A program made the translations under genes and the position numbers. DNA of 27,608 bases from Paramicrosporidium saccamoebae KSL3 (Eukaryota; Fungi; Cryptomycota): NCBI GenBank assembly GCA_002794465.1, contig MTSL01000073.1, positions 15,946-43,553 on the forward strand. The letters run 5' to 3'. Of the stretch, positions 2,959-22,715 are shown one piece after another (position 1 is the stretch's first letter; each line of letters starts with the position of its first letter). The notes below the pieces were generated by a model. That model had not been told where the DNA came from, ran no database searches, and was given only the letters and a program-made list of their open reading frames with translations.

Positions 2959-3214
2959 TTTCTTTTTTAATACACAAGTTTGCTTTGGATTGCCCGCCAT
3001 ATATATGTAGGAAGTTCGCTTCAAGAACGTGTTGCTCGCTATATGTGCGTAGGGAGGAACTCGTGTTTAACGATGGATCGCTATTGTACAATAGACCCTA
3101 CCACATAAAATATCACAGTTCTCCACAAAGTAAATCATATTAATATTTCCATTAAAGGCAATGTTTGGACAAACGGCGCGGTTCTAAATTTGGAACGACG
3201 ATTGTGCGTCGAGA

Positions 3215-5796
3215 ATGCCGGTCGCCGTGACTGAGAAGCGAGAATCGCGGACAGTCAGTCAGGTGCCATCGAGGACCATGAGCAACGCTCCTTCACTGAG
3301 CAAGTTGAATGACGACGCGGACTATGGCTTTGATAAGAAGGATGTCAAGCTCGAGCAAGGCAAACAGCGTGGACTGTTTTCATTCCTCACTGAGGGAGAC
3401 AAGCAATGGTTGGTCTATGTCACAGTTATTTCATTCATTGTGCGTCTTGCCTTTCTCAGTCATCCCTCGGTTGTCATCTTTGATGAGGTGCATTTTGGCG
3501 GGTTTGCACAAAAGTATCTCAAGAGAGAGTTCTTTCAAGACTTGCACCCTCCTCTGGCACGTCTGCTGGTGACGCTTAGCGCTTGGGTTGGCCGATTTGA
3601 TGCCAACTTTTCATTCTACAACATTGGGGCTGACTACATCAAAGCGGGAGTGCCGTATGTGACAATGCGCGCCTTTACGGCCGTGTCGGGAGCAGTCGTT
3701 CCTTCCATAGCGTTCGTGACGACTCGAGCAATGAATCTGAGCTTTTTCACTTCCTTGGCCATTGCGACCATGCTGATATTCGACAATGGCTTTGCTACAC
3801 AATCGCGTTTAATCCTGCTCGATTCCTACTTGGTGTTGTTTACCACGTTGGTGGCATTTTTTTGGGTACTATTCCAAAGACAGCGTGAAAGGTAATAATC
3901 AAGTTTGGATGCTAACCATTATTTAGACCATTTACTCGAGAATGGAAGACGTGTCTTCTTGGAATAGGGGTCAGTATTGCTCTTGCCGCCAGCTGCAAAT
4001 GGGTGGGACTCTTTACTGTGGTGGCAATTGGCATTTACACTATTGTGGATCTTTGGAACATTCTCGGAGATGTAAACAACTCTATGAAGACTGTTGGCCG
4101 CCATTTCATGTCGAGGGCGCTCTCTCTGATAGTAGTCCCATTGACCATTTACGCCGCCACTTTTTGGGTGCATTTTGCGCTCCTTCGTGACTTTTCGCCG
4201 GCAGCCTCTTCCTTGTCCATTGAATTTCAGCAAACTCTGCGTGGCGGTGAACTCTCACCGACCATGGCCAATGTGTATTTTGGATCGCAGATTCGCATCC
4301 GTCAGTACAGGTCCGAGGGAGCCTTCTTGCACTCTCATGCCTCAGTGTACCCCGCTGGCAGCAAGCAGCAGCAGGTGACTGGATACCACCATCGTGACCA
4401 GAACAATCTGTGGATTGTCCGACGCGCTTTTGATGTCAACCGGACTTATGTGGAGGAGGAGACTGATGAGCGAGAAGAGCTAGTTCAGCTTAGACATTTG
4501 GACGAGCTTCGTCTTGAACATGTGCCCACTGGCCGTTTCCTCCACAGTCACGTCGTCGATCCTCCCATTTCTAACAAGGAAAAGCAAAAGGAGGTCTCTT
4601 GTTATGGACACAATCCCTCAAAGTTTTCCGACTATAATGACAACTGGAGGATTGAGATTGTGGATAGCGTGGGCAACTCGATCACTGAAGAGGATGAAGA
4701 TGCTGACATGAACGACGGTAAGGAAAAGAAGAGAAAACCGTTTGTTTTTGCGATTGGGACAAAGTTCAGGCTAGCACATCGCATGATTGGTTGTAAATTG
4801 CATTCTCGGAATAAGGCGCTTCCAGAGTGGGGCTTTAAGCAATCCGAGGTGACCTGTGGATACGAAACGCTTCGCAGCAACCAGATTTGGATAGTTGAAT
4901 CGAATGAACATCCGCTGGCTGATCCTAATACCTCTCTCAAATCATCATTCCCCAAAAAGAGCTTCCTAGGCAAGTTTATCGAGTTGAACAAGAAAATGTG
5001 GGACACTAACGCTGGATTGTCCGCCCACCATCCATTTGGATCCCGTCCTGATGCCTGGCCTCTGCTCGCCAGAGGAATCGGCTTCTGGAATGGCAATCAC
5101 GTGCCCAAGACTGAAAAACAGCACAAGGAGGAAAAGAACAAGAAGGCTGGCAAGAAGAATGCCTCGGGAGAGGAACAGCCAGAGGAAGATCCTGAAGACA
5201 AGCTAGAACAAGCACAGCTGGCTCAGGAGTATGTCAAGTTCAAGGGACAGCAAATGTACTTGTTGGGAAATCCTGTCGTGTGGTGGTCATCAGCTGCAGC
5301 AATTGGAATCTATGTGCTGACCTTGCTCACATTCCGTATTTGCAAGAGACGAAACTTTTCGATTGCTGCCAAGATTGAGCGTTCGTCGTTTGGAAGCCAG
5401 CTCCACTTTTTCTCCCTCTCTGGGTTCATGTTTATTCAATGGTTGTGGCACTATATTCCATTCTTTGGCATGCGTCGACAGCTTTTCCTGCATCATTACC
5501 TCCCTGCCCTATACTTTGCCGTCTTGTTATTTGCAATCCTGCTGGAGGCCGTCCTTGCTGGCGTGTCATCAGCAGTCAAGCTGAATGATCAAAATAGTCG
5601 TCGACTAAAGATTGCCGTTCTCTCCTTATACGTAGCGGCTACAATTGTCGTGTTCTGGAAGCTGGCGCCACTTGGCTATGGTCTGCGAATGAGCAAAACC
5701 CAATGCGAGTCGTTAAAATGGCTTAAGAGATGGGATTTTGACTGTAGCAGTCTTGTGGACCCCGTCTCCAATGCCATTGTGACCAGTGCTAACTAG
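3215..5796 (+). CDS. PMT1: Dolichyl-phosphate-mannose:protein O-mannosyltransferase, PMT1-like; exons 3215-3891, 3927-5796
   Basis: DEVHFGGFA..DLHPPLA loop-1 motif, MIR domains (LHSH..YPAGSKQQQVTGY), C-terminal MRRQLFLHHYLPALYF. A 35-nt intron 3892-3926 (GTAATA..GCTAAC..TTTAG) restores RERPFTREWKTCLLGIGVSIALAASCKWVGLFT. PMT1 versus PMT2 subfamily is by recalled motif only. Confidence 0.93.
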
Positions 5797-5882
5797 CAAT
5801 AATAAAGCGTGGTATGGGATTTAACGGTGGGTCGGGGTGACGTGGTCAAGTCGTTGTGTGGTGACATGATATAGTCCTCATG

Positions 5883-6095
5883 CTGTCGCGTAGTGGGGAT
5901 AAATAGTATGGACTGTCAGGCGGGAAGAGACGGGAAGAGACGAGAAGAGACGAGAAGAGACGAGATGGGACGAGAATAGAATTTATTCAGTCAATCCAAC
6001 GACCCATTTATAGTCTCACAAATAACATTATCCTTCATCGATTGTTCTGATTATCCCTTCTCCAAACTAGGGAACTATCCTCAAATACCCAACTA
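5883..6095 (+). repeat. Dispersed non-coding element, copy A, with internal 10-bp unit expansion
   Basis: Core AGAATTTATTCAGTCAATCCAACGACCCATTTATAGTCTCACAA (5978-6021) matches the reverse complement of ~20540-20583 with about 3 mismatches; 5' end CTGTCGCGTAGTGG is the exact reverse complement of 19084-19097; tail CCTCAAATACCCAACTA matches the reverse complement of 20510-20526. Confidence 0.88.
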
Positions 6096-6284
6096 ATCAG
6101 TCTTCTACGTCACAATGCGATGACATGGTAAAGGTATCATGTGGTGACATGAAAAAGTTATCATATGGTTTTAGTCCCATAGTTTGGTGGACTTTTCGGT
6201 GGTACAGCGGCTTAAACCCGCAATTTTATAGTCTCCTTGTATAATCTCTTGTACGCACAGAAATTTATTACTCTAATATCTACG

Positions 6285-8093
6285 CTAGGCCGCAGAGGCC
6301 TTTTTCTGTTTCAACATTTGGGCAATCTCTTTGGCACGAATCATACATTCCTTCTTTGATCGTCCCACTACTTTGGAAATGTTCTCCCAACGGCTCGGGT
6401 CATCAGCCTTGTACATTCTCAAGCCTTCTTGGAGACTCTTTTGTTCCTCAGCGGTCCATACCGCAGGAGCTTCAGGGACGGGCTCCGTTGTACCAGGAGC
6501 GTCAAAGACAGTGGTCGGCTCTGCTTGATCAATGCGCGGGTCACGTTTCTTTTGCATGGCCTTGTAGTCAGTTTGCACTTCGGTGGAGAGTACGGTCTGG
6601 CCCTCGTCGGTAGTCTGTTTAATCTCATTTGAGCGTTTGATAATCTCATCAGTGGTACGCTGGGGAAGGGTCTTGTCCATGTGGGAGATGGTGCGATTGT
6701 ACCATTCGGTGATACGGGCCCAACGCTCGCGCATTCCTCCCGGATGCGTTTTGATGGCATTGATTAGAGTGTCCACTTCGGGAAGGGACCATGGGGCTTC
6801 AGCCTTTACATTGGTTGGTTTATCCACTGGCCGTACAATTGGGGATCCCAAAGATTCAGCCTCAGAGTGCTTTGCAGCATATTCTTCTTCAAGCCAAAAG
6901 TAGATTCCCTCCGTCTCACCGGCATCAAATAGGCCTTGGGCTGTTGCCAGAGACCTCTCCAGATCAGTCTCTCTCAGCAGGTACTTTTCGAGCAGCAATG
7001 AACGCTCATTCATTTGGGCCACATTCGTCTTGTTGGAGACAAAATAGAGGTGATCGATAAATATCTTTTTAAAAGTCTTTTTGACTTTTCGGGCAGCAGC
7101 CTCGGCCGCTTCTTTGGACTTTTTGGCTTCCAGTTGAGCCTGTGCGACGCGTTCCTTCTCAAGACGCTCCTCTTCTCCCTTCTTTAATTTTTCCTGCTCC
7201 TTTTCCTGTGCCAACTTGAGAGCTGCCATTTCCTTCTCCATCTTGAGGGCATCTTTTCGCAGCTTGTCATCTTCCCTGAAGCGTACCATTCTGGGGTCTA
7301 GCTTGTAGGCTTGCTCAAAGAGCCGTCGGAGACGCGCGTTATCTTCATTCTTGCGTTTAGTCCTGTTTGCCTTGTTCTTCTTGTCCATCCAGCGCTTGTC
7401 TGCTCGGTTCTCGGGGTTGTCGTTTTCATCCTCGTCAAGATATTCAAAGGTGCGCCATGACTCGAATGCTGACCAAAACCCATAGAACGCCTCGACATCT
7501 TCCCTTGGAGAGTAGGCGTGACCAACATCAGGGACGGGCTGTTTCCTACTGAAGCGGGCATTTATAATGAACACTGGACGGTAAATATTCAAAAAGTCCT
7601 CTACGTCTCCAGACTTGAAAGCTTCCTCTCCGGGAATAGAGTCGTCAAAGGCGTTGGCGTCGACGGAATCGTACAGTTTGCGCTTGTCCTGGTCGGACAG
7701 CACTTGGTAGGCTTGGAAGATGCACTTGAAAATATTGTCCTCGACAGAATCCTCCACCGACGAAGACTGCTGTAGCTTGTCGGGATGGTACTGTAGCACT
7801 CTTTGGCGGTACGCAGTCTTGATTTCCGAAGGGGTAGCCAAATGGCGCTTCTCGTGTAATCCCAATAAAAGATAGTGGTCCTGTTTCTTCCAGTTGCGGG
7901 CATCAAGGTTCAACAGACGCAAGTCTACCGCCCCAGCAGTGGGCTTTGCGGATGAGGGGCGGGGAAGGGGCACCGGAGGGGGAAAGTTGGTGGGTTCTGG
8001 CACAAATTGTGGCAGATGCTTTGACAAGAAGCAGTGATAGCTATGGCGGTACTCGATGAGCTCGCGACAGGCGGCTTTGCGGTTTCTGCTCAT
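6285..8093 (-). CDS. ZUO1: Zuotin/MPP11 (DNAJC2) ribosome-associated J-protein with two C-terminal SANT/Myb domains
   Basis: DARNWKKQDHYLLLGL, J-domain HPD (QYHPDK), zuotin domain FYGFWSAFESWRTFEYLDE..RWMDKKN, and two SANT repeats (WSLPEVDTLINAI..RWARI; WTAEEQKSLQEGL..RWENI). Confidence 0.96.
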   Translation of the reverse strand: MSRNRKAACRELIEYRHSYHCFLSKHLPQFVPEPTNFPPPVPLPRPSSAKPTAGAVDLRLLNLDARNWKKQDHYLLLGLHEKRHLATPSEIKTAYRQRVLQYHPDKLQQSSSVEDSVEDNIFKCIFQAYQVLSDQDKRKLYDSVDANAFDDSIPGEEAFKSGDVEDFLNIYRPVFIINARFSRKQPVPDVGHAYSPREDVEAFYGFWSAFESWRTFEYLDEDENDNPENRADKRWMDKKNKANRTKRKNEDNARLRRLFEQAYKLDPRMVRFREDDKLRKDALKMEKEMAALKLAQEKEQEKLKKGEEERLEKERVAQAQLEAKKSKEAAEAAARKVKKTFKKIFIDHLYFVSNKTNVAQMNERSLLLEKYLLRETDLERSLATAQGLFDAGETEGIYFWLEEEYAAKHSEAESLGSPIVRPVDKPTNVKAEAPWSLPEVDTLINAIKTHPGGMRERWARITEWYNRTISHMDKTLPQRTTDEIIKRSNEIKQTTDEGQTVLSTEVQTDYKAMQKKRDPRIDQAEPTTVFDAPGTTEPVPEAPAVWTAEEQKSLQEGLRMYKADDPSRWENISKVVGRSKKECMIRAKEIAQMLKQKKASAA

Positions 8094-8348
8094 TTCTCGG
8101 CAACCCCCGGTAAGCGCGATCGTTGGTGGATTTTGGATGCTGACTACTGTAGGCCAAATGCATGACTCGAAGAAACATGCACAATTTGAAGAATATTCCC
8201 AAATTGGAGAATACGCATGGCTTGAGGAAAATATTTTTTAATCCCCGCGGCGCGTGATGTAGCAGATGACTTTTGGCAGCATAGGATTCAGAGTCAGGGC
8301 CCCGGCTCGTGGACCGCGGACCGTGGTATACTAACTACGTCCGGGTCA

Positions 8349-9796
8349 ATGCCGCAAGCCTCCAACGCTGCCTCCCTAGTGGCATCTGATTACGACCCTC
8401 GGAAGATTGGTTATCTTGTAAAGGATGAGGACCGCCCTGAAATTGAAGCATTCCTAGCACAGAATCCCGCCCTCGTTACTGACTATATTCCAGTGGCCAT
8501 CATTGGTGAAGGTAATGCATCGGACTTGCTTATTAGGCCGAATAGGCACCTTTAGCACTGTATACAAGGCAATCGATGTGAAGCATTACTCGCGAGACAA
8601 TTCGTCCTGGATTGCTGGTTCGCGACAGGACATTTACGATGTGGCCCGTCTCTTGGCCCTCTATACTGCCCTGACCCACAGTGTGCCCACCCGGGCTCGA
8701 AAACGGGTTGTAAATTCACGTCTAAATAACTGCATCCGAGAATATGTCGAGGCACAATATACTGGTGGCATGAATGGTGACAATTTTGAGCCGGCACAGC
8801 TGCAGAGAAATTTGGAGGCCCGTCCGCCCGTGTTTGTGGCAATCAAGAGGATCAATGCTACTTCGGGACCAAAGAGAATAGCCGAAGAGCTCATGTTTCT
8901 GAGAGACTTGAAGGGTCTCCATCATGTCGTGCCGATTACGACCGCCTCGCGCTGGGAAGATCAGGTCATTGTAGTCTCACCATACTTTTCCGGCATTGAT
9001 TTCAGGGTACCCACCTTGCTGACTCTAAAATGCATAGGATTTATTGGCTTCGTTGACAATTGCAGATGTCGCTGGATATATGAGACTTTTGTTAGAGTCT
9101 TTGGCACACGTACATTCCAATGGGATCATGCATCGAGATATCAAGCCCAGTAATTTCATGTTTGCGCGCGATTCTGATGGACATTATCGCGGTTTGCTGG
9201 TTGATTTTGGTTTGGCTCAGTATGAGGAGCAGGACATGTCAAAGAGGGCAAAGACGGCTGGACGTAAGACTGACGGTGCTTGCCCGGATCACTTGCGAGG
9301 CGTGTCCCTGTTTGAAAAGATTAAGGATTTGCCTCCAGGCTATATCCAGAATGATCCAAGAGCGCAAATGAAGGCGTCTCGAGCTGGCACAAGGGGGTTT
9401 CGCGCTCCCGAAGTGTTATTCAAGGTTGCCCACCAGACTGTTGCCATTGATGTTTGGTCTGTTGGAGTGATCCTCCTTACCCTCCTGGCGAGGAGATATC
9501 CGTTCTTCCAAAGCACTGATGACTGTGACGCTCTGGTGGAGCTTGCGTCGATATTTGGAAGGGAGGAAATGTCGGCGGCAGCTTTATCGTACGATCGTGT
9601 ATGGCATTGCAAGGTCCCCACTGTCCCTGTGCATCGTCTCTCCTGGAGACATCTCTGTAAACAATTGAATCCAAACTGGCGTGAGACGGTACCTGACGAA
9701 GCATTTGACTTTTTGGACCGTCTTCTCGACTTGGATTATCGCAAGAGGATCACGGCGCTGGAAGCACTGGATCATCCTTTTCTAGTAAACTTTTAA
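8349..9796 (+). CDS. CDC7: Cdc7/Hsk1 (DDK catalytic subunit) kinase; exons 8349-8511, 8546-9006, 9038-9796
   Basis: Introns 8512-8545 (34 nt) and 9007-9037 (31 nt) restore IGEGTFSTVYKA and DFRDLLASL; HRDIKPSNF, LVDFGLAQ and the Cdc7 signature RAGTRGFRAPEVL..IDVWSVGVILLTLL.RRYPFFQS.DD.DALVEL. Confidence 0.95.
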
Positions 9797-10036
9797 ACAT
9801 ATTTGATTGGTCCTCTCCGTTACAGGTTGCCTGCGCCAGCTAGTTTCATTTGGGATGCAAAGCTTCGTCAGGGACTCTGCTTGAACTCTTTGAATTTCAT
9901 TCTCGACTGTTGACTTTTTGTTCTTGGGTCGCATTGCGGCACTGAGCCACTTTGTTATAGTAAACTTTAAGTATATTTGATTGGCTCTCCCCGTTACAAG
10001 TCGCCTGTGCCAACTGGTTTCACTTGAGATGCAAAG
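9783..10036 (+). repeat. ~80-bp direct duplication (9783-9862 and 9958-10036)
   Basis: By-eye alignment gives 12 mismatches and 1 gap. Each copy contains TTGATTGG and ends in GATGCAAAG; copy 1 overlaps the CDC7 stop, copy 2 contains the ATG at 10029. Confidence 0.9.
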
Positions 10037-10503
10037 AGGAACCACGACTCCTTTACTACGGGCTCGTCGTACTGGAGACACTATGGAGCTTGGTCGACAG
10101 GCGGGACGAAATCGTCTTGCCGTTACAATTGTAATTCTCTTGGGAGCTTTGTTGCTGGGGCTGGTCGTTTATCGTGTGCACGGACTAATGACTGAACCCA
10201 CCCAATTCCTCGTCAAAGAAGATTACAGTTCCGAAAAGCTTTCGCCAGAAAAGCTGCAGGAACTTGTAGGAATGTTTTATGCCAAGGACACTACTAAGAA
10301 TTCCGAGTTGGAGGCTCTGTATAAACAGGGAGTCAAGGTACAATTGCTACTTGCCTAACTCTTAGATTATCACTCGTGAACAGTTGCCCAAGAACACTAG
10401 AGTAATCCCTCCTGGTGGAATGGTGACTATGGATTTCGTCGAGGACCGTCTGAATGTTCACCTCGATGGCAACTCGTGCATAAAGAAGGCCAAATATGGC
10501 TAA
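10029..10503 (+). CDS. Membrane-anchored peptidase inhibitor, I78/potato inhibitor I (I13) fold; exons 10029-10337, 10366-10503 (alternative start 10083)
   Basis: A 28-nt intron 10338-10365 (GTACAA..CCTAAC..CTTAG) joins in frame to IITREQLPKNTRVIPPGGMVTMDFVEDRLNVHLDGNSCIKKAKYG*, the typical RVI.PG.MVTMD...DRLNVH family motif. N-terminal hydrophobic helix LAVTIVILLGALLLGLVVY. The ORF track start at 9981 is not an ATG. Confidence 0.85.
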
Positions 10504-10543
10504 CTATAATAACCAGCGGAGTTGTGAAGTAAATGTAACATGT

Positions 10544-10720
10544 GTTGAATATTGTGAGTAATGCGAGTAGCGTGAGTGGTGTGGGTGGGTTGAATAGTGT
10601 GAGTAATGCGAGTAGTGTGAGTGGGTTGAATAGTGTGAGTAATGCGAGTGCTGTGAGGAATGTAAATAATGTAAGCAACATGAATAGTGTGAGTAATGCG
10701 TGGATGGGTTGAATAGTATG
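10544..10720. repeat. GT-rich minisatellite built from 9-bp subunits; core TGAATAGTGTGAGTAATGCG x4 plus a partial
   Basis: Cores at 10546, 10591, 10627, 10681 (spacings 45, 36, 54, all multiples of 9); partial at 10710. Confidence 0.88.
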
Positions 10721-10813
10721 ATCCAGTTCAATCGTGTGGTGCTCACACTCACAAGCGTGATAGGATTCTTTTCATTAAATTCATCATTCTACTGACAATT
10801 CTCTCAACGTCGG

Positions 10814-10860
10814 CCAATTAGTCTACAAAGCAATATGTTCAGAATAGGGAATCTATAAAT
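10814..10860 (+). promoter_or_regulatory. CCAAT (10814-10818) and TATA-like TATAAAT (10854-10860) upstream of the carboxypeptidase
   Basis: Motifs read directly; TATA-like box ends 27 nt before ATG 10887. Function inferred. Confidence 0.45.
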
Positions 10861-10886
10861 GTCAACACAGAGTCCAAACAAAAACG

Positions 10887-12136
10887 ATGCGTCTCTGGTC
10901 AAGCTCTGCTGTCGTCTTCTGGACTTTGGCAGACACGGCATATTCTAGTTTTATCGGGGAGAGATACTTGGTGGAGTGTCAGGTTCAAACAGATGAGCAG
11001 ACGGAATTTGTAAAGCACCAGGTCGACTGGAACGCGTTAGATTTGTGGGGGAGTACTGATCATGTTGGGACATTAAAGATACTTGCAAATGACAATCAGT
11101 TAAGATTGCTGCAGGCAGCTTTGACTTGCAATCCACCTACAAACATTCGGAGCATTGAGGCAGAGATTGAGAAAAATTCTGAAAAGCGGCACCTTTTCAA
11201 CTCGGGTTTCTTTGATATCTACCAAAATTATACTAGCATCCAAGCGAGACTTGCCGGTATAAAGTCGACGACAGGGTTGATAGTCCAGCAGGATCTTGTG
11301 GGAAAGTCACACGAAGATAGGAGCATTACCGTCGTCCATATAAAGTCGGCAAGAACGATGCCGCAGAAAAAGATTTGGGTCAGCTGCGGCCAGCATGCAC
11401 GAGAATGGATTGCACCTGCCTCTTGCTTGTACTTGATTGACAGACTAATGTCTGGATATGGCGAGAATAACCGGATAACAACACTGTTAGACAACTTTGA
11501 GGTCTATGTGGCTCCACTCATCAATCCTGATGGGTACGAGTTTTCGCGATCCTCTGACAGATACTGGAGGAAGAATCGCAGACCTAATGGCAAGGGAGTG
11601 TATGGAGTTGATTTGAACCGCAACTGGGATGTAAACTGGGGACTTGTAGGTACAATGATATATTTTTGAATCAATTATTAGGCACATCAACGTCTCCAAC
11701 ATCGCATTTATACAGGGGACCCTCGGCCGAGAGTGAACCTGAAGTAGCCAGCACCGCAAAATTTGTGAGGTCGCTACAGAATGTTGTTGCTGGAATTGAT
11801 GTACACTCCTATGGCCAGTTGATTCTGCGCAACTATGGGTGGACTACCCAGCCTTGTCCCGACGAGGCGGCATTCAAGACCATTGGTGATCGAATTGCAA
11901 GGCAAATGAACAAGATTAATGGCGAAAAGTATATTTCTCAACGATCTGGGGACCTTTACCCTGCTTCAGGTGCCATGGACGACTGGATTTACTATGCGAC
12001 AAAATCACTCGGGATGACTTTTGAGTTGCGTGATCGAGGATACTATGGATTCCTGCTGCCGCCAAACTTTATTGTACCTACTGGAAAAGAGCTTGTTGAA
12101 GGGATCATTACCCTTGGCGAAAGTTTGAACAAGTAA
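10887..12136 (+). CDS. Secreted zinc carboxypeptidase A/B, family M14A, with propeptide; exons 10887-11649, 11682-12136
   Basis: Signal peptide, prodomain, GQHAREW (Zn His/Glu), WRKNRR, GVDLNRNW, IDVHSYG (third Zn ligand), SGAMDDW, FELRD (catalytic Glu). 32-nt intron 11650-11681. Confidence 0.94.
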
Positions 12137-12284
12137 TGAATTTGATCGCATTTGTGTGTTTAAAAATTGGCAATGAACAAGTTTGTAGTGTCCTACGCGG
12201 CAATGGCCTGATATGTTTGGGTCTCGCATGAATTTTTGGCCATGGTAAAACTGACCAATAACATTTGTACAAGTCAGCATTGGC

Positions 12285-13055
12285 ATGGAGGGTGAAGACG
12301 GACCATTCCGCCGCAGACCAAAGGAAAGCTACGACTACAATGATGGATCATTCTCCACTGCGACCAACTTGACACAACTCTCCCGAGAAACCCAACGCCA
12401 TCTTCAGCGTGTGTACGGCAACCTTACTGTTACGACCTTGTTCGCTGCTGCCGCAACATATTTGTTTAATCAAGGCATTATTCCAGAACCTGGAATCATT
12501 GCAATCGCATTATTGTTTGCATGCCTCTTTGGAACCATGTTCTCTGCCAACACGGCAAGAAATTCTCTTGCCAGACATGGTGGTTTGTACGGATTTGGCT
12601 TTGCTCAGGGTTGGCTGGCCGGACCACTGGTGCGTCATGTGGCCATGGTCAGTCCTGAAACGGTCATGATGACTGTCATTGCCACAGTTCTAATCTTTGG
12701 CTCTTTTACCATGAGTGCCTTTTACTCTCCGCGTCGTCAGTACATGTACTTGGGCGGAATACTGGGGAGCGCCATGTCGATCATGATGCTCGCGGGATTG
12801 GCCAACATATTCCTCCGATCAAGCATGTTCGCAAGCGCCGAGTTGTATCTTGGGTTATTCATCTTTTCCTTTTACGTGCTCTATGACACTCAGGTGATTG
12901 TAGAACGATCCGAAGGCGGTTCCCGTGATCCAGTACTTCATGCCATCACTCTATTCACCGACTTTGCCGCCATTTTCGTTCGACTCTTGATCTTGCTCTC
13001 CAAAAACCGCAACGACACCGACGGGCCTCCACGCAAGCGTGATCGCAAAAAATAA
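12285..13055 (+). CDS. BI-1: Bax inhibitor-1 (TMBIM6-type) ER membrane protein
   Basis: RHLQRVYGNL, six to seven hydrophobic helices, YVLYDTQVIVE, HAITLFTDFAAIFVRLLILL and a basic C-terminus (RKRDRKK). Confidence 0.92.
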   Translation: MEGEDGPFRRRPKESYDYNDGSFSTATNLTQLSRETQRHLQRVYGNLTVTTLFAAAATYLFNQGIIPEPGIIAIALLFACLFGTMFSANTARNSLARHGGLYGFGFAQGWLAGPLVRHVAMVSPETVMMTVIATVLIFGSFTMSAFYSPRRQYMYLGGILGSAMSIMMLAGLANIFLRSSMFASAELYLGLFIFSFYVLYDTQVIVERSEGGSRDPVLHAITLFTDFAAIFVRLLILLSKNRNDTDGPPRKRDRKK

Positions 13056-13302
13056 TACTGCATTGTGAAGTTGATTAAAAGCGCATTGTGATTATAACAG
13101 GGGCGGATGAGATTGTGGTTGGGAGGTCTGTATAAGGGTTGTAAATGTGTTGTACTTTCTCACATTATAGTCTTTTATCAACATAGATACTCTCTCGTAA
13201 CACGGCCTCCAGTCCCCATAGTATTGTTCTAAATAAAAGATTTTTTGTTTATATAACCCGGCTGACCCGACGAACTGGGCTGACTGACTGTCATAATATC
13301 AA

Positions 13303-15400
13303 ATGCGCCGGGACATTCGGCTTTTGGTGCTTGGGGATGGTAGCGTGGCTTTGGTAATAATGAGTTGTAGAACAGGTGGGTAAGACGACCATAATTACAT
13401 CGCTTCTGACAGAGGCTTTTGCCGAGGACGTGCCGCCACATTGCGTCATTGTTTATCTTGTAGGTTCCTCATGTGCTGCCCGAGATATCTATTCCTCCAA
13501 GCATTACTCCTGACAACGTCAGCACAGTGCTAGTGGACTCTTCGGGTATGCACTGCTTATAATGTCTTGTCTCGTAGCCCGCCCAGAAGACCGCTCAGCA
13601 TTGGAGGCGGAAATTCGCCAAGCTCAGGTCATTTGTCTAGTATACGCTGCTGACGAGACAAAATCCTTTACTAGGATTGCCTCGCACTGGCTGCCGTATA
13701 TCAGGTCACTGGGAGTAAATGTCCCAGTGGTCTTGGTTGGGAACAAGATTGACATACGCGGAGCTGACATTACAAATGAGTCACTTGAAGACGAAATCCT
13801 CCCCATCATGAACGACTTTAAAGAGGTGGAGACGTGTGTAGAATGTTCAGCCAAGACGCTCGTCAATATTGCAGAAGTCTTTTACTTTGCGCAGAAGAGT
13901 GTGCTCCATCCGACGGCTCCGCTGTACGATTCTCGAGAACAAAATTTGAAGCCAATGTGTGTCAACGCCTTGAGGAGGATTTTCAAAATTTGCGACATTA
14001 ATAAGGATGCCATTCTGGATGATGAGGAGCTCAACGAATTTCAAGTATGGCTGAGGAGAGGAAATGCTCATGTTGTAGATTAAGTGTTTTGGCACCCCTT
14101 TGCAGCAATTGGAGCTCGAGGGAATTAAGGACCTCGTCAGGGATTCGGATCCTTTTGGTGTGTCCCACAATGGACTTACTGAAGAAGGATTCTTGTTCCT
14201 GCATAAACTTTTTATTCAAAGGGGTCGGCTAGAGACAACTTGGACGGTGCTTCGCAGATTCGGCTACGACGACGATCTGTCCTTGCGAGAAGACTTTTTG
14301 CATCCGGCCTTGTCCCTCACTGTGGATTCTACAGTGGAGCTCAGCCCAGTTGGTTACCAGTTTTTTGCAGAATTGTTTGCAAAATTTGACAAGGACAAGG
14401 ACGGAGCTCTTTCGTGGGACGAGCTTGAGGAGCTCTTTGCAACTGCACCCGAAAATCCTTGGCTTAAATATGGATTCCCCGAGACGACACTGACCAACGA
14501 GGCGGGCTTTGTGACTCTGCAAGGCTTCCTTGCCCAGTGGAGCATGACGACGCTTTTGGATTACATGACTACTCTCGAATATTTGGCCCACCTTGGTTTC
14601 TCAGGGGACACTCGCACTGCTTTGAGAGTGATGCGAGGCAAGCGATTTGACCGACCAAAGGACCGTGCCAAGAGAGACGTGTTCCTGTGTCTGGTTGTGG
14701 GTGCTGTTGGCTCTGGAAAGGTTTGCGAGTTTCCATGGTGTTTATCTCGGTTTAGACTTCCCTGCTTCGTTCGCTAATCAACCGCCCCTATTCAACCGGA
14801 TATGTTCCAACATCACAATGTAATTATACCGTAAACAGTGTGGAAACTGAGGGATCTGAAAAGTTTCTCGTTGTACTTTTTTGATCCATGTGTTGACATT
14901 TAGATGATGGAGATTAGCCAACACCAGGCTCTCGACCAAAAGATTCTTTCTGATCCTAATCAGGTTGCTAATGTTGATCTTGTGTGCTACGTGTATGACT
15001 CTTCCGACCCTAACTCGTTCGGATACATTACCAACCTGAGGGTAAAGGGAACATTAGTATTTATTTGTAGCAAAAATACGAGATTCTGTCTCACATTCCA
15101 AGTTTGATTGTGGCTAGTAAGAGCGACTTGGACCGAGTGTCACAGCGACACGAAGTTCAGCCCGATGTTTACTGTCGACAACTACGTCTGCCGTCTCCGA
15201 TTTTTGTATCAGCAAAAGATGCCGTTCTTGCAGACCTATTCCAGACTGTCATCAAAGTTGCAATGACTCCGTCGCTTGCCATGCCGAGGGTGTCTGCTGG
15301 TAAGCATCGACGCCGAGTTGTCACTGGAGCAACGATTGTTGGCATTTCTGCCGCTCTCCTAACGGCCACATTTTTGTTTTTCCGGTTTACTCGTAAATAG
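13303..15400 (+). CDS. GEM1: Mitochondrial Rho GTPase Miro/Gem1; exons 13303-13339, 13371-13429, 13464-13545, 13578-14044, 14079-14720, 14756-14872, 14904-15041, 15071-15400
   Basis: Spliced product MRRDIRLLVLGDEQVGKTTII..VDSSARPEDR..LVGNKID..ECSAK, EF-hands (DINKDAILDDEELNEFQ; DKDKDGALSWDEL), second GTPase domain (VVGAVGSGKTSLL..VASKSDLD) and a tail-anchor helix. Seven 29-35 nt GT..TAG introns give a continuous frame. Confidence 0.93.
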
Positions 15401-15458
15401 TTGATTCATAAAACGACCCGTGATTTTAATAAGGGGCCCTTTGGTGGGGGGGGGGTTT

Positions 15459-15570
15459 GATGACGAGTAAAGATTCTTTGATTATGAGTAAAAATTCTTT
15501 GATGAGTAATGATTCTTTGGTGATGAGCAATACTTTTTTAGCGGCGAGTGATGACTCTTTGATAGGTAAT
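15459..15570. repeat. Degenerate 18-22 bp tandem repeat (GATGAGTAA..ATTCTTT), about 5 units, after a G10 tract (15446-15455)
   Basis: Units GATGACGAGTAAAGATTCTTT, GATTATGAGTAAAAATTCTTT, GATGAGTAATGATTCTTT, GGTGATGAGCAATACTTTTT, ..CGAGTGATGACTCTTT, between the Miro stop and LeuRS start. Confidence 0.8.
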
Positions 15571-15607
15571 AATCACCGCTCAGCGGACGACAATCACGCT
15601 TGTACAG

Positions 15608-15630
15608 TGAGTCATTGGAGGGTTGAGTCA
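15608..15630. promoter_or_regulatory. Two AP-1/Gcn4-type TGAGTCA sites upstream of LeuRS
   Basis: TGAGTCAT at 15608 and 15624, within 95 nt of ATG 15703. TGA(C/G)TCA is the established Gcn4 site and aminoacyl-tRNA synthetases are known Gcn4/ATF4 targets. Confidence 0.55.
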
Positions 15631-15702
15631 TAGGTCATGTTGACCAGGGTTTAACAATAACCAGTTAAATAGCGGTAACAGGAGCGGTACACTGCAACAG
15701 AA

Positions 15703-18700
15703 ATGGATAAGAACGAAAGCAAAGGAACATTTAAACGCGATTTTCTGAGAAATATTGAGCAAGAGGTACAGGAACAATGGAAGGCTAGCCATGTCTTTGA
15801 GATGGATGCACCGGGCAAAGACGAAGAGGTCCCGCCGAAATTTATGGCTACATTTCCGTATCCCTACATGAATGGTAAGCTCCATCTGGGACACGGCTTT
15901 ACTGCCAGCAAGGCCGAGTTTGCTGTAGCATTTGAAAGGATGCAGGGCAAGCGAGCCATCTTTCCATTCGGCTTCCACTGTACCGGAATGCCCATCAAGG
16001 CGTCGGCAGACAAGATCAAGAAGGAAATGGCGCTGTATGGCTGTCCTCCGGTTGTGCCCGCTTCTCAGGAAGAGTCCAACACAGCAACTGCCAAGCATAG
16101 CAAGGTAGCAGCCAAGACTGGAAATGCAAAGCTTCAGTGGGATATTTTGATGCAAATTGGGATTCCCGAGGATGAGATTCCCAAATTTGCCGAAACTGGT
16201 CATTGGATGGAGTACTTTCCCCCACTGGCCCAAAAAGATCTCGCAGGACTTGGATTTCAGATTGATTGGCGCCGCAGCTTCATAACGACGGATCAGAATC
16301 CATTTTATGACTCATTCATCCGCTGGCAATTTAACAAGCTTCGGGCTCAGGAAAAGATCAAGTTTGGTAAGAGGCATACCATCTTTTCCCCGCTGGATGG
16401 ACAGCCCTGTCTAGACCACGATCGCCAGAGTGGTGAGGGAGTGGGAGCAAAGGAATACACTGTAGTCAAGTTGCTCGTAGCAGAATTCCCGGCTGATGAT
16501 TCTCGATTCGACAATGTTCGTGGCAGCAAAGTGTTTCTGGGAGCCGCAACTCTGCGTCCCGAAACCATGTATGGCCAGACGAATTGCTGGGTGGGCCCCG
16601 ATATTGAGTATGGTGCATACCGGACCAATATTGACGGCGAGTTGATTGTCTGCACGAGACGGGCCGCAATTAATATGGCATATCAAGATTTGACGCATGC
16701 GGACGGTCAGGTGGAGTGTGTAGCCAGCTTTAAGGGATCAGACCTCATTGGATTGCCTCTAAAGGCACCAAATGCCATTTACCCGATCATCTACGTACTG
16801 CCAATGTTCTCAGTGTCTGCTAACATGGGAACTGGCGTGGTAACGTCAGTGCCATCGAATGCGCCGGCCGATTATGTCGCGTTGAGGGAAATTAAAGACA
16901 AGGAGGCTCTTCGTCAAAAGTTTAATGTGGACGCTTCAAAGGTGCTTCCTTTCGATCCAGTCCCAATCATCAATACACCCACCTATGGAAATTGCAGTGC
17001 CGAAGTTGTCGTGAAGCAGCTCAATATCAAGAGTCAGAATGACGCCGTCAATTTGGAAAAGGCCAAGGACTTGGTATACAAGGACGACTTTTATGCCGGC
17101 GTCATGAGTGTTGGACCCCATTCGGGAAAGACTGTGCAGGAAGCCAAAACCATTATCCGTGACGAGCTGATTGCCGAAAAGGCTGCATTTGTCTACTTTG
17201 AGCCTGAAAAGCTAGTCATTTCACGCTCTGGCGATGAGTGTGTGGTTGCATTGACTGATCAGTGGTACATTGACTATGGCGAGGCGTCCTGGAGGAAGCA
17301 GGCTGAGCTCTGCTTAGAACGGATGAACGTCTTTTCCGACGAGGTCCGTCATCAGTTTTCCAGCACTCTCGATTGGATGCGTCAGTGGGCCTGCTCTCGC
17401 TCATTTGGTCTAGGAACCCGTCTGCCTTGGGACCCAACCTATCTGATTGAATCGCTCTCTGACTCTACCATCTACATGGCATACTATTCGGTGGCCCATA
17501 TTCTTCATCAAGGAAGCTTGGATGGATCGGTGCGTCCAAATGGTATTAATCCTGAGCAAATGTCAGATGATGTGTGGGAATGGATCTTTGGGGAGGACTG
17601 CTCTGAAGATGCTGACGGCTCAAAGATTGCTGAAAAGTCGGGAATTTCGGTCGACCTGATCCAGCGGATGCGACGCGAGTTCCGATACTGGTATCCTATG
17701 GATCTCCGTGTAAGTGGAAAGGATCTTGTTCCGAACCATCTGACCTTTTCCATCTATGTGCATGTGGCCCTCTTTCCCGAGCGTTTCTGGCCCCGCGGAA
17801 TGCGTGCCAATGGCCATCTCTTGTTGAACTCTGAAAAGATGAGCAAGTCTACTGGCAACTTCATGACTCTTGAGGAGGCGTTGCAGGAATTCGGTGCCGA
17901 TGCTACCCGATTCGCTCTGGCGGATGCCGGTGATAGTGTTGAGGACGCAAACTTTTTGAAGGACACTGCAAACACGTTTATCCTTCGTCTCTACAACCAA
18001 ATTGAGTTTTGCCAGGAAATGATGAGCGGATCTGGCAGTTTGAGACAGGATGACGGCACTGAACATTTCCACGACCGTGCATTCGGAGCAGAGATTAACC
18101 GCGCCATTGATCTGACTGGAACTGCCTACAAGGCGACCAATTATCGTGACGCCGTCAAGTATGGGTTCTTTGAGTTGCAAAATGCCCGCGATCGGTATCG
18201 TGATGCCACCAACGGGAATATTGGCATGAATTGGGGTCTCATCAAAAGGTTTATTCATGTCCAGGCTCTTTTGCTGACTCCCATTGCACCACACTTTTGT
18301 GAACATATTTGGAAGAATATTCTGGGTAACAAAGGGTTTGCCATCAATGAGCCGTTCCCAACGGCTGGTGAGGTTGACGAAGGACTCTTGTCTGCCGCCA
18401 ACTACCTCCAGGATGTTGCACATAATCTGCGCACCGCTCTTCAGGCCGAGACAAGACCCAAGAAAGGAGCTGCAAAGACTGTGACCGCCGCAGAGATTTA
18501 CGTCGCTGTCAAGTACCCCAAATGGCAGGAGGATGCCATTGCAATCCTCAAGTCTTGCTACGATGGATCCAAGTTTGTGGCCGATGACGCAGTTGTTGCA
18601 GCTCTGAAGCCCCTTATGAAGGAGCGTCCCAACAAGAAACTCATTCCCTTTGTGATGGAGCTCAAGAGCCGCGTCAGCACTGACGGGCCTGCTGCATTTG

Positions 18701-18915
18701 AACGCCGCCTCCCATTTGATGAGATGGGCGTCATTTCCGACAATATTGATTTCCTGACACGATCCCTGGGCCTTGTGCAGATTTCAGTCACACCAATCGA
18801 CCCCGCACACGTTGTTCTGAAGAATGATGATGCTACTGAAGCCGTCGAAATCAAGCGCCGCCAGGAAACTTCTATTCCAGGAACACCCACGGCGTATTTT
18901 TATCATCAAAATTAA
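15703..18915 (+). CDS. CDC60: Cytosolic leucyl-tRNA synthetase
   Basis: 1070 aa; ATFPYPYMNGKLHLGH (HIGH), KMSKS, CP1 editing domain (ATLRPET; GTGVVTSVPS), DLRVSGKDL, ALADAGD; eukaryotic cytosolic type; no intron required. Confidence 0.98.
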   Translation: MDKNESKGTFKRDFLRNIEQEVQEQWKASHVFEMDAPGKDEEVPPKFMATFPYPYMNGKLHLGHGFTASKAEFAVAFERMQGKRAIFPFGFHCTGMPIKASADKIKKEMALYGCPPVVPASQEESNTATAKHSKVAAKTGNAKLQWDILMQIGIPEDEIPKFAETGHWMEYFPPLAQKDLAGLGFQIDWRRSFITTDQNPFYDSFIRWQFNKLRAQEKIKFGKRHTIFSPLDGQPCLDHDRQSGEGVGAKEYTVVKLLVAEFPADDSRFDNVRGSKVFLGAATLRPETMYGQTNCWVGPDIEYGAYRTNIDGELIVCTRRAAINMAYQDLTHADGQVECVASFKGSDLIGLPLKAPNAIYPIIYVLPMFSVSANMGTGVVTSVPSNAPADYVALREIKDKEALRQKFNVDASKVLPFDPVPIINTPTYGNCSAEVVVKQLNIKSQNDAVNLEKAKDLVYKDDFYAGVMSVGPHSGKTVQEAKTIIRDELIAEKAAFVYFEPEKLVISRSGDECVVALTDQWYIDYGEASWRKQAELCLERMNVFSDEVRHQFSSTLDWMRQWACSRSFGLGTRLPWDPTYLIESLSDSTIYMAYYSVAHILHQGSLDGSVRPNGINPEQMSDDVWEWIFGEDCSEDADGSKIAEKSGISVDLIQRMRREFRYWYPMDLRVSGKDLVPNHLTFSIYVHVALFPERFWPRGMRANGHLLLNSEKMSKSTGNFMTLEEALQEFGADATRFALADAGDSVEDANFLKDTANTFILRLYNQIEFCQEMMSGSGSLRQDDGTEHFHDRAFGAEINRAIDLTGTAYKATNYRDAVKYGFFELQNARDRYRDATNGNIGMNWGLIKRFIHVQALLLTPIAPHFCEHIWKNILGNKGFAINEPFPTAGEVDEGLLSAANYLQDVAHNLRTALQAETRPKKGAAKTVTAAEIYVAVKYPKWQEDAIAILKSCYDGSKFVADDAVVAALKPLMKERPNKKLIPFVMELKSRVSTDGPAAFERRLPFDEMGVISDNIDFLTRSLGLVQISVTPIDPAHVVLKNDDATEAVEIKRRQETSIPGTPTAYFYHQN

Positions 18916-18983
18916 CCACCAACTATCTAGTTATAAAGGTGATTTTTATTCGTGTCGTGGTGAGGAGATGTGATGATTTACAG

Positions 18984-19097
18984 TAGCTGGGTATTTTATG
19001 ATTGTTATGTCATTTGTGAGACTAGAAGTAGGTTCTTGGATTGACAGTGGACGGCATTGAATGTATCCTCTTCTCGTTTCTTTCCACTACGCGACAG
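18984..19097 (-). repeat. Dispersed non-coding element, copy D (shortest)
   Basis: TAGCTGGGTATTTTA..TTTGTGAGACTAGAAGTAGGTTCTTGGATTGAC..CTTCTCGTTTCT..CCACTACGCGACAG is collinear with copy B and the reverse complement of copies A and C. Confidence 0.8.
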
Positions 19098-19207
19098 ATT
19101 ATGGTCAACACTAACAAATCGACACATGCCAGTTTAGCTTGTAAGAAAGGTCCACACATACGGCGGTCGTTATGGTTGCTATTGTTTATAGCACGACAAT
19201 TAGTTTC

Positions 19208-19242
19208 TATAAATATCTCGGCCCCCAGCTCTTGGTGAGTCA
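19208..19242 (+). promoter_or_regulatory. TATAAATA (19208-19215) and TGAGTCA (19236-19242) before ATG 19252
   Basis: Motifs read directly; function inferred. Confidence 0.4.
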
Positions 19243-19251
19243 ACACTCAGC

Positions 19252-20441
19252 ATGGAGACTGTCACGATCGTCGTTGCCGTAGTGTGTACAATTCTTGCTG
19301 GACTGATAGCCTGTTTAACGAGTGCAGAAGAGTTTCTGGGAGATCGTCGATGGTTCTCTGGTGTCAAGTTCCTCGCGTGCCTTGTTGTGCTCTTCGGCGG
19401 GCCGGTGGTAGCGGCAAATGCTGCCGCTTGGTCTTTTGCGGTTGGAGGAGCGTTACCCTGTGCCGCCATAGGAGTCCTAGTTGGGCGTCGGATGTACACG
19501 AATCGTCAGCAAGCACAACTTGTTGGGCGCCTGACCGAGTTGTGCCCTGACGCCACAATATGGGAAGCATCGATGGGCTTTTATCCGGCGTTATCGGTTT
19601 CTTATGGTGTACCTGTGTTTATCTATAGATTGCTGTGAGCCGCTATCAAGGGATTGGCCCCGAGATCATCCCAGAATTGCCAATTCAAATATTGGAAAGG
19701 GTCTTCACAGACCGATTAATGGAGTGCCAGCAGCTGTCTTTTGAGGACTTTAAGGCTGAATGTCTCCGCGGCATGTCATTTTACACTATGGATGACTTTG
19801 GGAGGAATGCTGCGCTGTTGCTTTTTGTAGAGACATCCCAACTCAAGGAATGCCGTGAATGGCTTATTGAGGCTGCAGTCTTATGGGAGGTGTGCAGCAA
19901 AATAGAAGATGAAGACGAGCTTATTTGTGCCATACGGTATATTTGGCACCATGATGTTTTTAGCCAAGACATCCGATCGAGCTTTACTTTTCACGCAGTA
20001 CGCAAAATGACCCCCGAGTCCAAAGAAGGCCTCTGTCAAGCTCTCCGTGCCAATCACAAAGGTGATGCATGGATTGCCATTCATTTCCCCGAGCCTTCAA
20101 ATATTAACAATGACACTGAGGCACCAAGCACAGACGACACCCCTTATAAGCCGTCAAATGTGGATAGCGCCCCCACTGACCCTGAGGCTTCTGTGCTGCC
20201 AAACGAGGAAAAAAATGCTCGAGCTGCAGGGGGGCCCATTGGAGGTATCAGGCTGGAGCGTTGGTCTTCCATGGGAAAGTACATGGAATGTCGATTTTGT
20301 AGATATCGACCCCCCAAGAGCCGGTGTATACCATCTGTTATCTACAAGGCCATGAAGCACATGTATCCATGGGCTCTGCGTTGTGGCAAGTGTGGATGTG
20401 GTGCTATGAGGTTTGGGCGGGTGAGTGATGTAGAAGGCTGA
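19252..20441 (+). CDS. Orphan ~385 aa protein: N-terminal TM helices, helical middle, C-terminal CxxC..CxxC; exons 19252-19596, 19629-20441
   Basis: A 32-nt GTTTCT..TATAG intron (19597-19628) joins the 128 aa and 268 aa ORFs in frame (FYPALS|IAVSRYQG); the second ORF begins with GTG and has no nearby ATG. C-terminus CRFC..CGKC. Confidence 0.7.
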
Positions 20442-20509
20442 TCAGCTGGATATTAAGGGATCATCATCTAGTTTGAATAAGACATGCTTGTGTGATAAAG
20501 TAGATCAAT

Positions 20510-20648
20510 TAGTTGGGTATTTTAGGATTACTACGTTGCTTGCGAGACCATAAATGGGTCGTTGGATTGACTGGATAAATTCTCTCCTTGTCCCATCTCG
20601 TCTCTTCCCGCCTAGCAAAGTCCGTGGTATCACTTACACTACACGACA
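20510..20648 (-). repeat. Dispersed non-coding element, copy B
   Basis: Reverse complement aligns to 5884-6025 (GGCGGGAAGAGACGAGATGGGAC..AGAATTTATCCAGTCAATCCAACGACCCATTTATGGTCTCGCAA) and to 6079-6095. Confidence 0.88.
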
Positions 20649-20734
20649 TTTGCGAACGAAACGATGAAGAATGGCACCACCACGAGTAGCAGCGGAGATG
20701 TAGATAATCTAAGATGACTAAAAGATGTAAGTTA

Positions 20735-20840
20735 CAATGAGAAACGAGAAGGGATGAAGAGAAGCGAGGAAAAAACTCATTTACTGCTAATCCAACGCCC
20801 CATTTATAGTTTCACAAATGACGCACTAAACCCTAAAATA
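20735..20840 (+). repeat. Dispersed non-coding element, copy C (diverged, inverted relative to copy B)
   Basis: AGAAACGAGAAG..AATCCAACGCCCCATTTATAGTTTCACAAATGAC..CCTAAAATA matches the family core and tail. Confidence 0.8.
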
Positions 20841-21030
20841 TTATAGATATCAATCTTCCACAATATCACATAAGTATGGTACTGATACAGTCTGTGCTTA
20901 CCGGTTGGTATAGCAGAACTGACAGTGGACTGAGTGAATTGCCATCAACCTCCCTAACACACTGTTCGACTATCATATATTTGTGTTTATTTAATAACCC
21001 AACAGTTGCCAGGCAAGTGCCCATGGTATA

Positions 21031-21846
21031 TTAAAACTCCGAAACGATTAGGATGGGACCTGTTATTGGACGACAACACGTACACCATAGTGCCAGAGTT
21101 TCATTGAGCCAGGGGGATTTTCCGTAGTGGTGAAACAGTAGCATTGCGTAATGTATCAAGAACAGCTCACCCTCGGGTCCTTCCATAATACCCATTGTAA
21201 TTCCGACAAATTTCCGAGTACACAACTTTCTGTCCAAGAACACCTTGTCTTGCCACAAATCAGCATCATCAAGACGGAGGGAGGCTGTGTGCAATAGCCC
21301 AATAAACACCGAGCCCATAAGAAAGAACAAGAGGGAGAGAGTACCGAGGAAATAGCCAGCGCAAAGCAATACTGCCAACAGTGCAAAAGGGATGGCATCA
21401 GTGAACAGGACGATAAGCCAGCCCAGCCATTTCTTGTATACCAACCTTCTACCAATACGGACATACCGCCTTCTCAAACAGAATACACTATCGGATTTAC
21501 CATAATAGCCGAGGGTCAAAGAATCGGGTGTATCCCAAACTGAGAACAGAAACCCGAAATGTTTCAAGTCGTGAAGACCATCGGACTGAAGCTTATCGCC
21601 AGGGCGAAATTTGGCGAGTGTTAAAGAACGTATACTGAAGCGTGAGAAGAGCCAGATATAAAAGAAGTATGGAATAAAGCCGGCCCAAATGGACGAATAG
21701 ATGATCCAGCCCCAGAAGGGATAGCACATGTTGACGGCGGTCCATATCATGAGCAACAACAAGAGCACATCGGTGATAATACAGAAGCATTTTACCAGTC
21801 TGGGGGCAATCGTGCTTCCCTTGGCAGGTCTAAATGTGAGATACAT
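21031..21846 (-). CDS. Orphan ~4-TM membrane protein (271 aa)
   Basis: ATG-initiated ORF with two pairs of hydrophobic helices separated by a basic loop; TATAAATA on the minus strand at 21927-21934; AATAAA downstream near 20987. Confidence 0.75.
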   Translation of the reverse strand: MYLTFRPAKGSTIAPRLVKCFCIITDVLLLLLMIWTAVNMCYPFWGWIIYSSIWAGFIPYFFYIWLFSRFSIRSLTLAKFRPGDKLQSDGLHDLKHFGFLFSVWDTPDSLTLGYYGKSDSVFCLRRRYVRIGRRLVYKKWLGWLIVLFTDAIPFALLAVLLCAGYFLGTLSLLFFLMGSVFIGLLHTASLRLDDADLWQDKVFLDRKLCTRKFVGITMGIMEGPEGELFLIHYAMLLFHHYGKSPWLNETLALWCTCCRPITGPILIVSEF

Positions 21847-22630: not shown

Positions 22631-22715
22631 CCCAGTCCAGTCCAGCCCAGTCCAGCCCAGTCCAGTCCAGTCCAGTCCAGCCCAGTCCAGTCCAGCCCAG
22701 TCCAGTCCAGTTCAG
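22631..22715. repeat. Pentamer microsatellite (YCCAG)16 plus TTCAG
   Basis: Sixteen TCCAG/CCCAG units at 22631-22710; explains the spurious PVQSS and WTGLG ORFs. Confidence 0.97.

Follow-up and report, generated by a model that had tools for sequence, protein, structure and literature searches.

The window analyzed here, 27,608 nt of Paramicrosporidium saccamoebae KSL3 (Rozellomycota), lies on contig MTSL01000073.1 of assembly GCA_002794465.1 and was placed by an exact look-up of its zuotin open reading frame (ORF), window position 1 corresponding to record position 15946. P. saccamoebae is an amoeba parasite with a compact genome. By Pfam, the genes around the copies described here are, in order, PMT, zuotin, a protein kinase, an M14 carboxypeptidase, BI-1, Miro, and LeuRS, and beyond LeuRS lie orphan genes. 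Within this region are four copies (A to D) of a short non-coding repeat, and two more (E and F) were found on a second contig, MTSL01000146.1. The latter was reached via the orphan paralogue PSACC_02139, and its last 22 kb were searched (positions in L029 numbering). The rest of MTSL01000073.1 searched (record 2736-15945) contained no further copy. In total, ~63 kb of P. saccamoebae sequence from the two contigs, out of a 7.3-Mb genome, was scanned and yielded six copies. The features are listed in Table 1.

Table 1. Copies of the repeat, their flanking sequences, and neighbouring genes. Positions refer to the window unless another contig is named; the strand of a copy is that of the element.
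Feature	Position	Strand	Remarks
PMT	stop 5796	+	Pfam
24-nt array, units 1-2 (TGACRTG...)	5838-5883	+	unit 2 interrupted by copy A
Target-site duplication ATGC, left	5880-5883		directly left of copy A
Copy A	5884-6114	-	231 nt, longest copy; nhmmer E=3.6e-41; between convergent PMT and zuotin
Target-site duplication ATGC, right	6115-6118		directly right of copy A
24-nt array, end of unit 2 and units 3-4	6119-6168	+	Tandem Repeats Finder (TRF) period 24, 2.0 copies; far side of empty site
Zuotin	stop 6285	-	Pfam
LeuRS	stop 18915	+	Pfam
Copy B	18969-19096	+	128 nt; one 5' module; most diverged copy
Orphan PSACC_00971	ORFs 19252-19638 and 19635-20441	+	P. saccamoebae name obtained via homologue search
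Copy C	20424-20648	+	225 nt; colinear with A; two 5' modules (20424-20481, 20491-20528)
Copy D	20726-20870	-	~145 nt; one 5' module; 160 nt past stop of ORF 21031-21846 (-)
271-aa ORF	21031-21846	-	unannotated in NCBI record
Two tandem ankyrin-like paralogues	22791-27109		NCBI: one product, PSACC_00972
Copy E	MTSL01000146.1, L029 6544-6687	-	both termini; flanks AGGC/AGAC; core deleted
Copy F	MTSL01000146.1, L029 ~4822-4955	-	degenerate; TATAAATGGGCTGTTGAATTGGCAATAAA retained

The four window copies align with one another, which bears out an earlier note on this DNA that had reported four homologous non-coding copies at about these positions. The core pattern GAGACNANAANTNGGNNNTTGGATT matched four times in the window, against 0.02 matches expected by chance. 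The 3' block CACTACRCGACA was exact in copies A, B, and C, as was TAGYTGGGTATTT; with up to one mismatch allowed, CACTACRCGACA gave four matches against 0.14 expected, the fourth being a one-mismatch chance match at 5274. A profile hidden Markov model of the copies (nhmmer) recovered those of the window at E=1e-32 to 1e-41 and nothing else there, and found E and F on MTSL01000146.1, the E-values ranging overall from 1e-19 to 1e-41. The weaker fifth copy that had been suggested at 13086-13115, after BI-1, gave no nhmmer match at E<=10.

As judged by pairwise local alignments, the boundaries given in the earlier note were too narrow on the 5' side, and the consensus ends of the element are 5'-TGTGAYGTAG...CACTACRCGACA-3'. 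It is the fourth copy (20735-20840) that is without the first and last blocks, not the third as had been claimed; copy D has no CACTACRCGACA block, so that where it ends on the 3' side is uncertain. The core is preceded by a 38-nt module, TGTGAYGTAGAAGRYTGATTAGTTGGGTATTTTAGGAT, of which B and D have one and A and C have two, the second module of A being degenerate. Copy A, with termini TGTGACGTAG...CTACGCGACA (element ends also given as TGTCGCGTAG...CTACGTCACA), additionally carries a 10-nt microsatellite at 5924-5980 (-), CTCGTCTCTT on the element strand (TRF unit GAAGAGACGA, 5.7 copies), of which the other copies have one or two units. Overall identity among the copies was 72-83%, A and C reached 89-91% in the core, B and C were ~75% alike, and G+C content was 35-43%. 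No ORF was found in any frame of any copy. Copy B lies 53 nt past the LeuRS stop codon and 155 nt ahead of the PSACC_00971 ATG at 19252, and copies C and D stand tail to tail with a 77-nt gap. The latter pair was considered as one fold-back element, which is possible in form (the arms are ~77% alike); two tail-to-tail insertions are simpler, since each arm has the defined ends of the single copies A, B, and E.

Copy A splits an array of four 24-nt units (TGACATGRNAAAGKTATCATRTGG) between the PMT and zuotin genes. An ATGC adjoins it at either end, and the 8-mers on its two sides differ. When copy A and one ATGC were removed, 5838-5883 joined to 6119-6168 gave 96 nt, a perfect 4 x 24 nt in register. 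By our own arithmetic, the joint chance of matching ATGC flanks and a restored phase is ~1/256 x 1/24. The identical flanking 4-mers and the restored array phase, which are independent of each other, therefore point to a 4-bp target-site duplication, and copy A demonstrably entered pre-existing sequence, duplicating 4 bp of its target. The 44-nt direct repeats that abut copy A were considered as a giant target-site duplication or as part of the element and were rejected; they are the two halves of the split array.

The setting of the remaining window copies could also suggest local segmental duplication or gene conversion without transposition. Copies B, C, and D are confined to 1.9 kb, in a region that is lineage-specific, beyond the conserved synteny, and that holds gene duplicates. 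However, copy A is 13 kb distant and has both a clean target-site duplication and an empty site, E and F are on another contig, and the copies have mutually unrelated flanks. We therefore assign this explanation very little probability.

Comparison with relatives was made on contigs of four uncultured relatives that share the gene order PMT, zuotin, kinase, M14, BI-1, Miro, LeuRS. The LeuRS homologues of uncultured relatives were 70-75% identical in amino-acid sequence, compared with 56% for 'Perkinsus sp. BL_2016' and 50% for Rozella. The element was absent from ~41 kb of syntenic loci in the four relatives. The PMT-zuotin spacer, 488 nt in P. saccamoebae, was 212 and 123 nt in relatives, a difference that roughly equals the length of copy A. 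Both orphan ORFs flanking C and D have homologues on a metagenome contig, L030, whose similarity to ORF 19635-20441 ends at window positions 20422-20429, that is, where copy C begins on its 5' side. No similarity to C or D was seen in the L030 spacer, but absence of the element from this site is not provable, because coding identity there is only ~69%. Across the metagenome, 19 matches to the core pattern were considered as relatives of the element and rejected; all were confined to the 25-nt pattern, and by our estimate their number is about that expected by chance for 18 specified bases in a collection of this size.

The target-site duplication and empty site of copy A, the copies on a second contig, and the absence from the syntenic loci of relatives uphold the broad idea of a non-autonomous mobile element. 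The copies are very probably relics of a transposable element of some kind.

The positions of the copies relative to genes were less regular than had been proposed. The earlier note held that the element always lies downstream of a stop codon in gene-sense orientation. Both neighbours of copy E, SAM synthetase (-) and isocitrate dehydrogenase (+), have their start codons towards it; the copy is 104 nt upstream of the SAM synthetase ATG and thus in a divergent promoter region, and the rule therefore does not hold. For copies A and F, "sense and downstream" is automatically true for one neighbour because both lie between convergent genes, and each is nearer, and antisense, to the other gene of the pair (A is 87 nt from the PMT stop codon, F ~9 nt from the kinase stop codon). 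Stop-to-block distances of 69, 69, 190, and 191 nt were numerically right for the starts of the blocks. With the true element limits, which extend further 5', the distances became 170 nt for A, 53 nt for B, -18 nt for C, and 160 nt for D, and the coincidence of two copies at "exactly 69 nt" disappeared.

The negative value for copy C reflects an overlap with ORF 19635-20441, whose last five codons and TGA stop codon (20439-20441) are the first 18 nt of the copy. Without copy C, the PSACC_00971 frame would run for 22 further codons to a TGA at about 20714. Insertion of copy C thus probably replaced the original C-terminus of PSACC_00971.

Another possibility is that the copies function in cis in this compact genome, as a termination, polyadenylation, or insulator module for neighbouring genes that would be either original or an exapted transposon. 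Five of the six copies lie 0-170 nt past a stop codon, AATAAA or AGTAAA occurs in A, D, and F, and one ORF takes its stop codon from copy C. In our gene-table tally of ~29 intergenic regions, four of the six copies fall in three of the ~6 convergent spacers (rough binomial p ~0.02). This tendency is real; it is also expected from purifying selection on neutral insertions, that is, selection against promoter disruption in a compact genome, and copies were found in all three kinds of intergenic region. The stop-codon distances vary from -18 to 170 nt, the element is missing at orthologous sites in the four relatives of the same gene order, copy E occupies a promoter region, B, C, and E have lost the TATA/poly(A) motif pair described below, and both A and F have the antisense orientation relative to the closer gene. 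These results speak against a conserved terminator or insulator at a fixed position, and we consider a cis-element improbable.

The earlier note had also pointed to short interspersed elements (SINEs) derived from tRNA, in this case transcribed by Pol III from the CTGTCGCGTAGTGG end (CTGTCGCG end). The strings on which this was based exist: TCGCGTAGTGG is one mismatch off the A-box consensus, and GTCAATCC lies ~40 nt downstream of it in copy B. However, the spacing between the A-box-like and B-box-like strings grows to ~104 nt in A, and the latter string is altered to GCTAATCC in D and E. ARAGORN found no tRNA in any P. saccamoebae sequence fetched, and Rfam searches of small regions gave no tRNA or SINE family at E<=10. 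Neither end of the element has an A-rich or simple-repeat tail. LINE (long interspersed element) machinery makes long target duplications of variable length, whereas the 4-bp duplication and the terminal inverted repeat of copy A are not signatures of retroposition. A tRNA-derived SINE is accordingly very improbable.

A family of structured non-coding RNA genes was considered on account of the core being conserved across copies and of a GAGAC/GTCTC pairing that, by eye in the alignment, appeared to be changed to GAAAC/GTTTC in D. Folding did not bear this out. Single copies (A to D, both strands) folded no better than shuffled sequence (z -0.85 to +0.97), and the RNAalifold consensus of -4.6 kcal/mol contained no compensatory pairs. 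Rfam returned nothing at E<=1 for the whole window, and at E<=10 on small regions only sub-threshold microRNA and long non-coding RNA matches (E 0.79-8.8), far below gathering scores. Moreover, copy E lost the core and kept the termini. Structured RNA genes are thus barely credible here. The SINE, the structured RNA, and the positionally fixed terminator are each contradicted because at least one defining feature fails.

The termini and flanks bear on which kind of mobile element is involved. The terminal nucleotides are TGT...ACA in A, B, D, and E and AGT...ACA in C. In copy A, TGTCGCGTAG/TGTGACGTAG form a terminal inverted repeat matching at 8/10 positions. The flanking 4-mers match at 4/4 positions in A (ATGC/ATGC), 2/4 in B (GAGA/GATT), 2/4 in C, 1/4 in D, and 3/4 in E (AGGC/AGAC). 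Over A to E, 12/20 positions match (binomial P=0.002), which is the pattern expected of old insertions with decayed duplications. A GTGGTGA-like motif beside all copies was dropped as marginal (p 0.01-0.05 each over 20 tests).

The interior carries motifs in a single orientation. On the minus strand of copy A, TATAAAT (6012-6006) is followed by the conserved GGGTCGTTGGATTGAC and then AATAAA (5987-5982), and TATAAAT followed 18 nt on by A(A/G)TAAA is found in A, in D (TATAAAT/AGTAAA), and in F (TATAAAT/AATAAA). The pair is degenerate in C (CATAAAT/GATAAA) and in B, and deleted in E. That copy E loses the core and keeps both ends is expected if it is the ends that are functional.

On these grounds, we put the chances at about even that the copies are specifically solo long terminal repeats (LTRs), decayed non-coding relics of one P. 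saccamoebae family. They would be left after recombination between the two LTRs of a small LTR retrotransposon, the 4-bp staggered cut in the target having been made by a retroviral/LTR-type integrase. To judge from the motifs, the internal TATAAAT-N18-AATAAA pair may be the former LTR promoter and poly(A) signal. Survival mainly between convergent genes would follow from insertions there sparing promoters in a genome that is ~76% coding. Besides this motif pair, the features that in combination make solo LTRs the closest match are the TG...CA ends, the short inverted repeat, the non-specific 4-bp duplication, the ends outlasting the interior in E, the internal tandem duplications, the variable 10-nt microsatellite, and the presence on more than one contig. 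What is compared here on the side of LTR retrotransposons is established knowledge.

Several observations weigh against solo LTRs. The scanned sequence contained no full-length element, gag/pol remnant, reverse transcriptase or integrase domain, primer-binding site, or polypurine tract. At 128-231 bp, the copies would be among the shorter LTRs, a perfect target duplication is present in copy A only, and TATA and AATAAA motifs may arise by chance at 35-43% G+C. The genome paper (accession MTSL00000000) gives repeats as only 0.53%, mostly simple, and makes no mention of transposons (PMC5701793). A literature search for transposons in Paramicrosporidium found nothing specific. Copies B and C flank the 1.3-kb orphan gene in direct orientation, yet they are only ~75% alike, against 89-91% for A and C in the core, and so do not represent the LTR pair of a single element. 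B, the orphan, and C taken together as one LTR element or composite transposon were rejected on the same comparison; moreover, no primer-binding site or polypurine tract was visible, and neither the orphan paralogue (L029) nor the homologue (L030) is flanked by copies.

The main rival to solo LTRs is a family of non-autonomous DNA transposons resembling miniature inverted-repeat transposable elements (MITEs), which a DDE transposase would mobilize by recognizing TGTSRCGTAG terminal inverted repeats and duplicating 4 bp. The copies are of suitable size, AT-rich, and non-coding, their intergenic positions are gene-proximal, and their internal structure is variable. The inverted repeat and 4-bp duplication of copy A fit as well, as does the result that no internal sequence of an LTR retrotransposon was found. 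However, the inverted repeat is short and weak beyond A (4/10 in B, 6/10 in E). The usual parents of MITEs leave characteristic duplications (TA for Tc1/mariner, TWA for PIF, 8 bp for hAT, and 9-11 bp for Mutator), whereas the ATGC of copy A is non-specific and not typical of a superfamily. MITEs usually form stable hairpins, and the folding results given above include no copy that does better than shuffled sequence. No transposase was found in the scanned sequence. A MITE-like origin is therefore possible but rather unlikely.

The relics could in addition have been exapted, their TATAAAT/AATAAA core serving as a portable termination/polyadenylation (or antisense-promoter) cassette between packed, mostly convergent genes. 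If true, this would account for copies having been kept mainly in 3'-3' spacers. We give the proposal little credence.

The region around copies B to D has further features of its own. The LeuRS C-terminus stops at the same point as its orthologues. In an uncultured relative with a 72% identical LeuRS (L024 13168-13630; also L025 and L026), (TTAGGG)n begins ~200 nt past LeuRS and runs up to the contig end; LeuRS is therefore the last gene before the telomere in that relative. In P. saccamoebae, conserved synteny likewise stops at LeuRS and is followed, from 18915 onward, by orphan genes, a pseudogene fragment, and tandem paralogues. The region past LeuRS looks like a former or rearranged subtelomere. 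PSACC_00971 has one full paralogue, PSACC_02139, close to the end of contig MTSL01000146.1, and a degenerate fragment at 22355-22505 (19228-19331 versus 22355-22455 at 74%; 20084-20112 versus 22478-22505). The 271-aa ORF is membrane-type in appearance and has a colinear counterpart of equal length and ~70% nucleotide identity on metagenome contig L030; it is therefore probably a real lineage-specific gene. A homologue search with the ankyrin-like paralogue matched only the gene itself.

The NCBI annotation departs from this gene order in three places. Miro and LeuRS (13562-18915) are fused into a single 1624-aa product, because of which the LeuRS ORF has no exact match in the record. The M14 carboxypeptidase and BI-1 (10887-13055) are merged as 657 aa, and the two ankyrin-like paralogues are annotated as a single 517-aa product. 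Outside the element family, the window also contains a duplication of ~174-nt period and 83% identity behind the kinase gene (9764-10036), an 18/36-nt tandem array upstream of the carboxypeptidase gene (10574-10700), and a (CCAGT)17 microsatellite at 22632-22715.

Taken together, the family is best read as an undescribed but ordinary transposon-relic repeat in the compact genome of a fungal relative, and it leaves the current understanding of transposons unchanged. A dispersed family of such relics shows that this reduced lineage of Rozellomycota had active mobile elements after its split from the nearest sampled relatives, and that short diverged repeats were overlooked by the original genome masking. 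If the local density holds, tens to hundreds of copies are possible. Annotation is affected where copy C provides the PSACC_00971 stop codon, and the family could be used as a presence/absence marker between strains.

Among known systems, tRNA-derived SINEs are likewise short, non-autonomous interspersed repeats and have an A-box-like string near one end, but the present copies have no tRNA-like fold or Rfam match, variable box spacing, and no 3' tail, and their insertion signature (4-bp target duplication, inverted termini) is of the integrase/transposase type. MITEs (Stowaway/Tourist-type and other miniature DNA transposons) share with them size, AT-richness, lack of coding sequence, a terminal inverted repeat with a target duplication, and a place in gene-proximal non-coding DNA. 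They differ in that the inverted repeat here is only ~10 bp and imperfect, the 4-bp duplication is non-specific, hairpin stability is lacking, and no related transposase is known. The solo LTRs of fungal LTR retrotransposons (for example, delta, sigma, and tau of Saccharomyces Ty1-Ty4) are about 250-370 bp, against the 128-231 bp seen here, and are associated with tRNA genes, whereas the scanned sequence contains no tRNA gene; nor does it hold a full-length parent, primer-binding site, or polypurine tract, and the present copies are old, at only 72-83% overall identity. As in those solo LTRs, however, the copies are short, dispersed, and non-coding, beginning with TG and ending with CA within a short terminal inverted repeat; the target duplication, in the 4-6-bp range, has no consensus; motifs resembling a TATA box and a poly(A) signal lie inside in a single orientation; and length varies by internal tandem duplication. 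A further likeness that we list is that solo LTRs far outnumber full-length elements in compact genomes.

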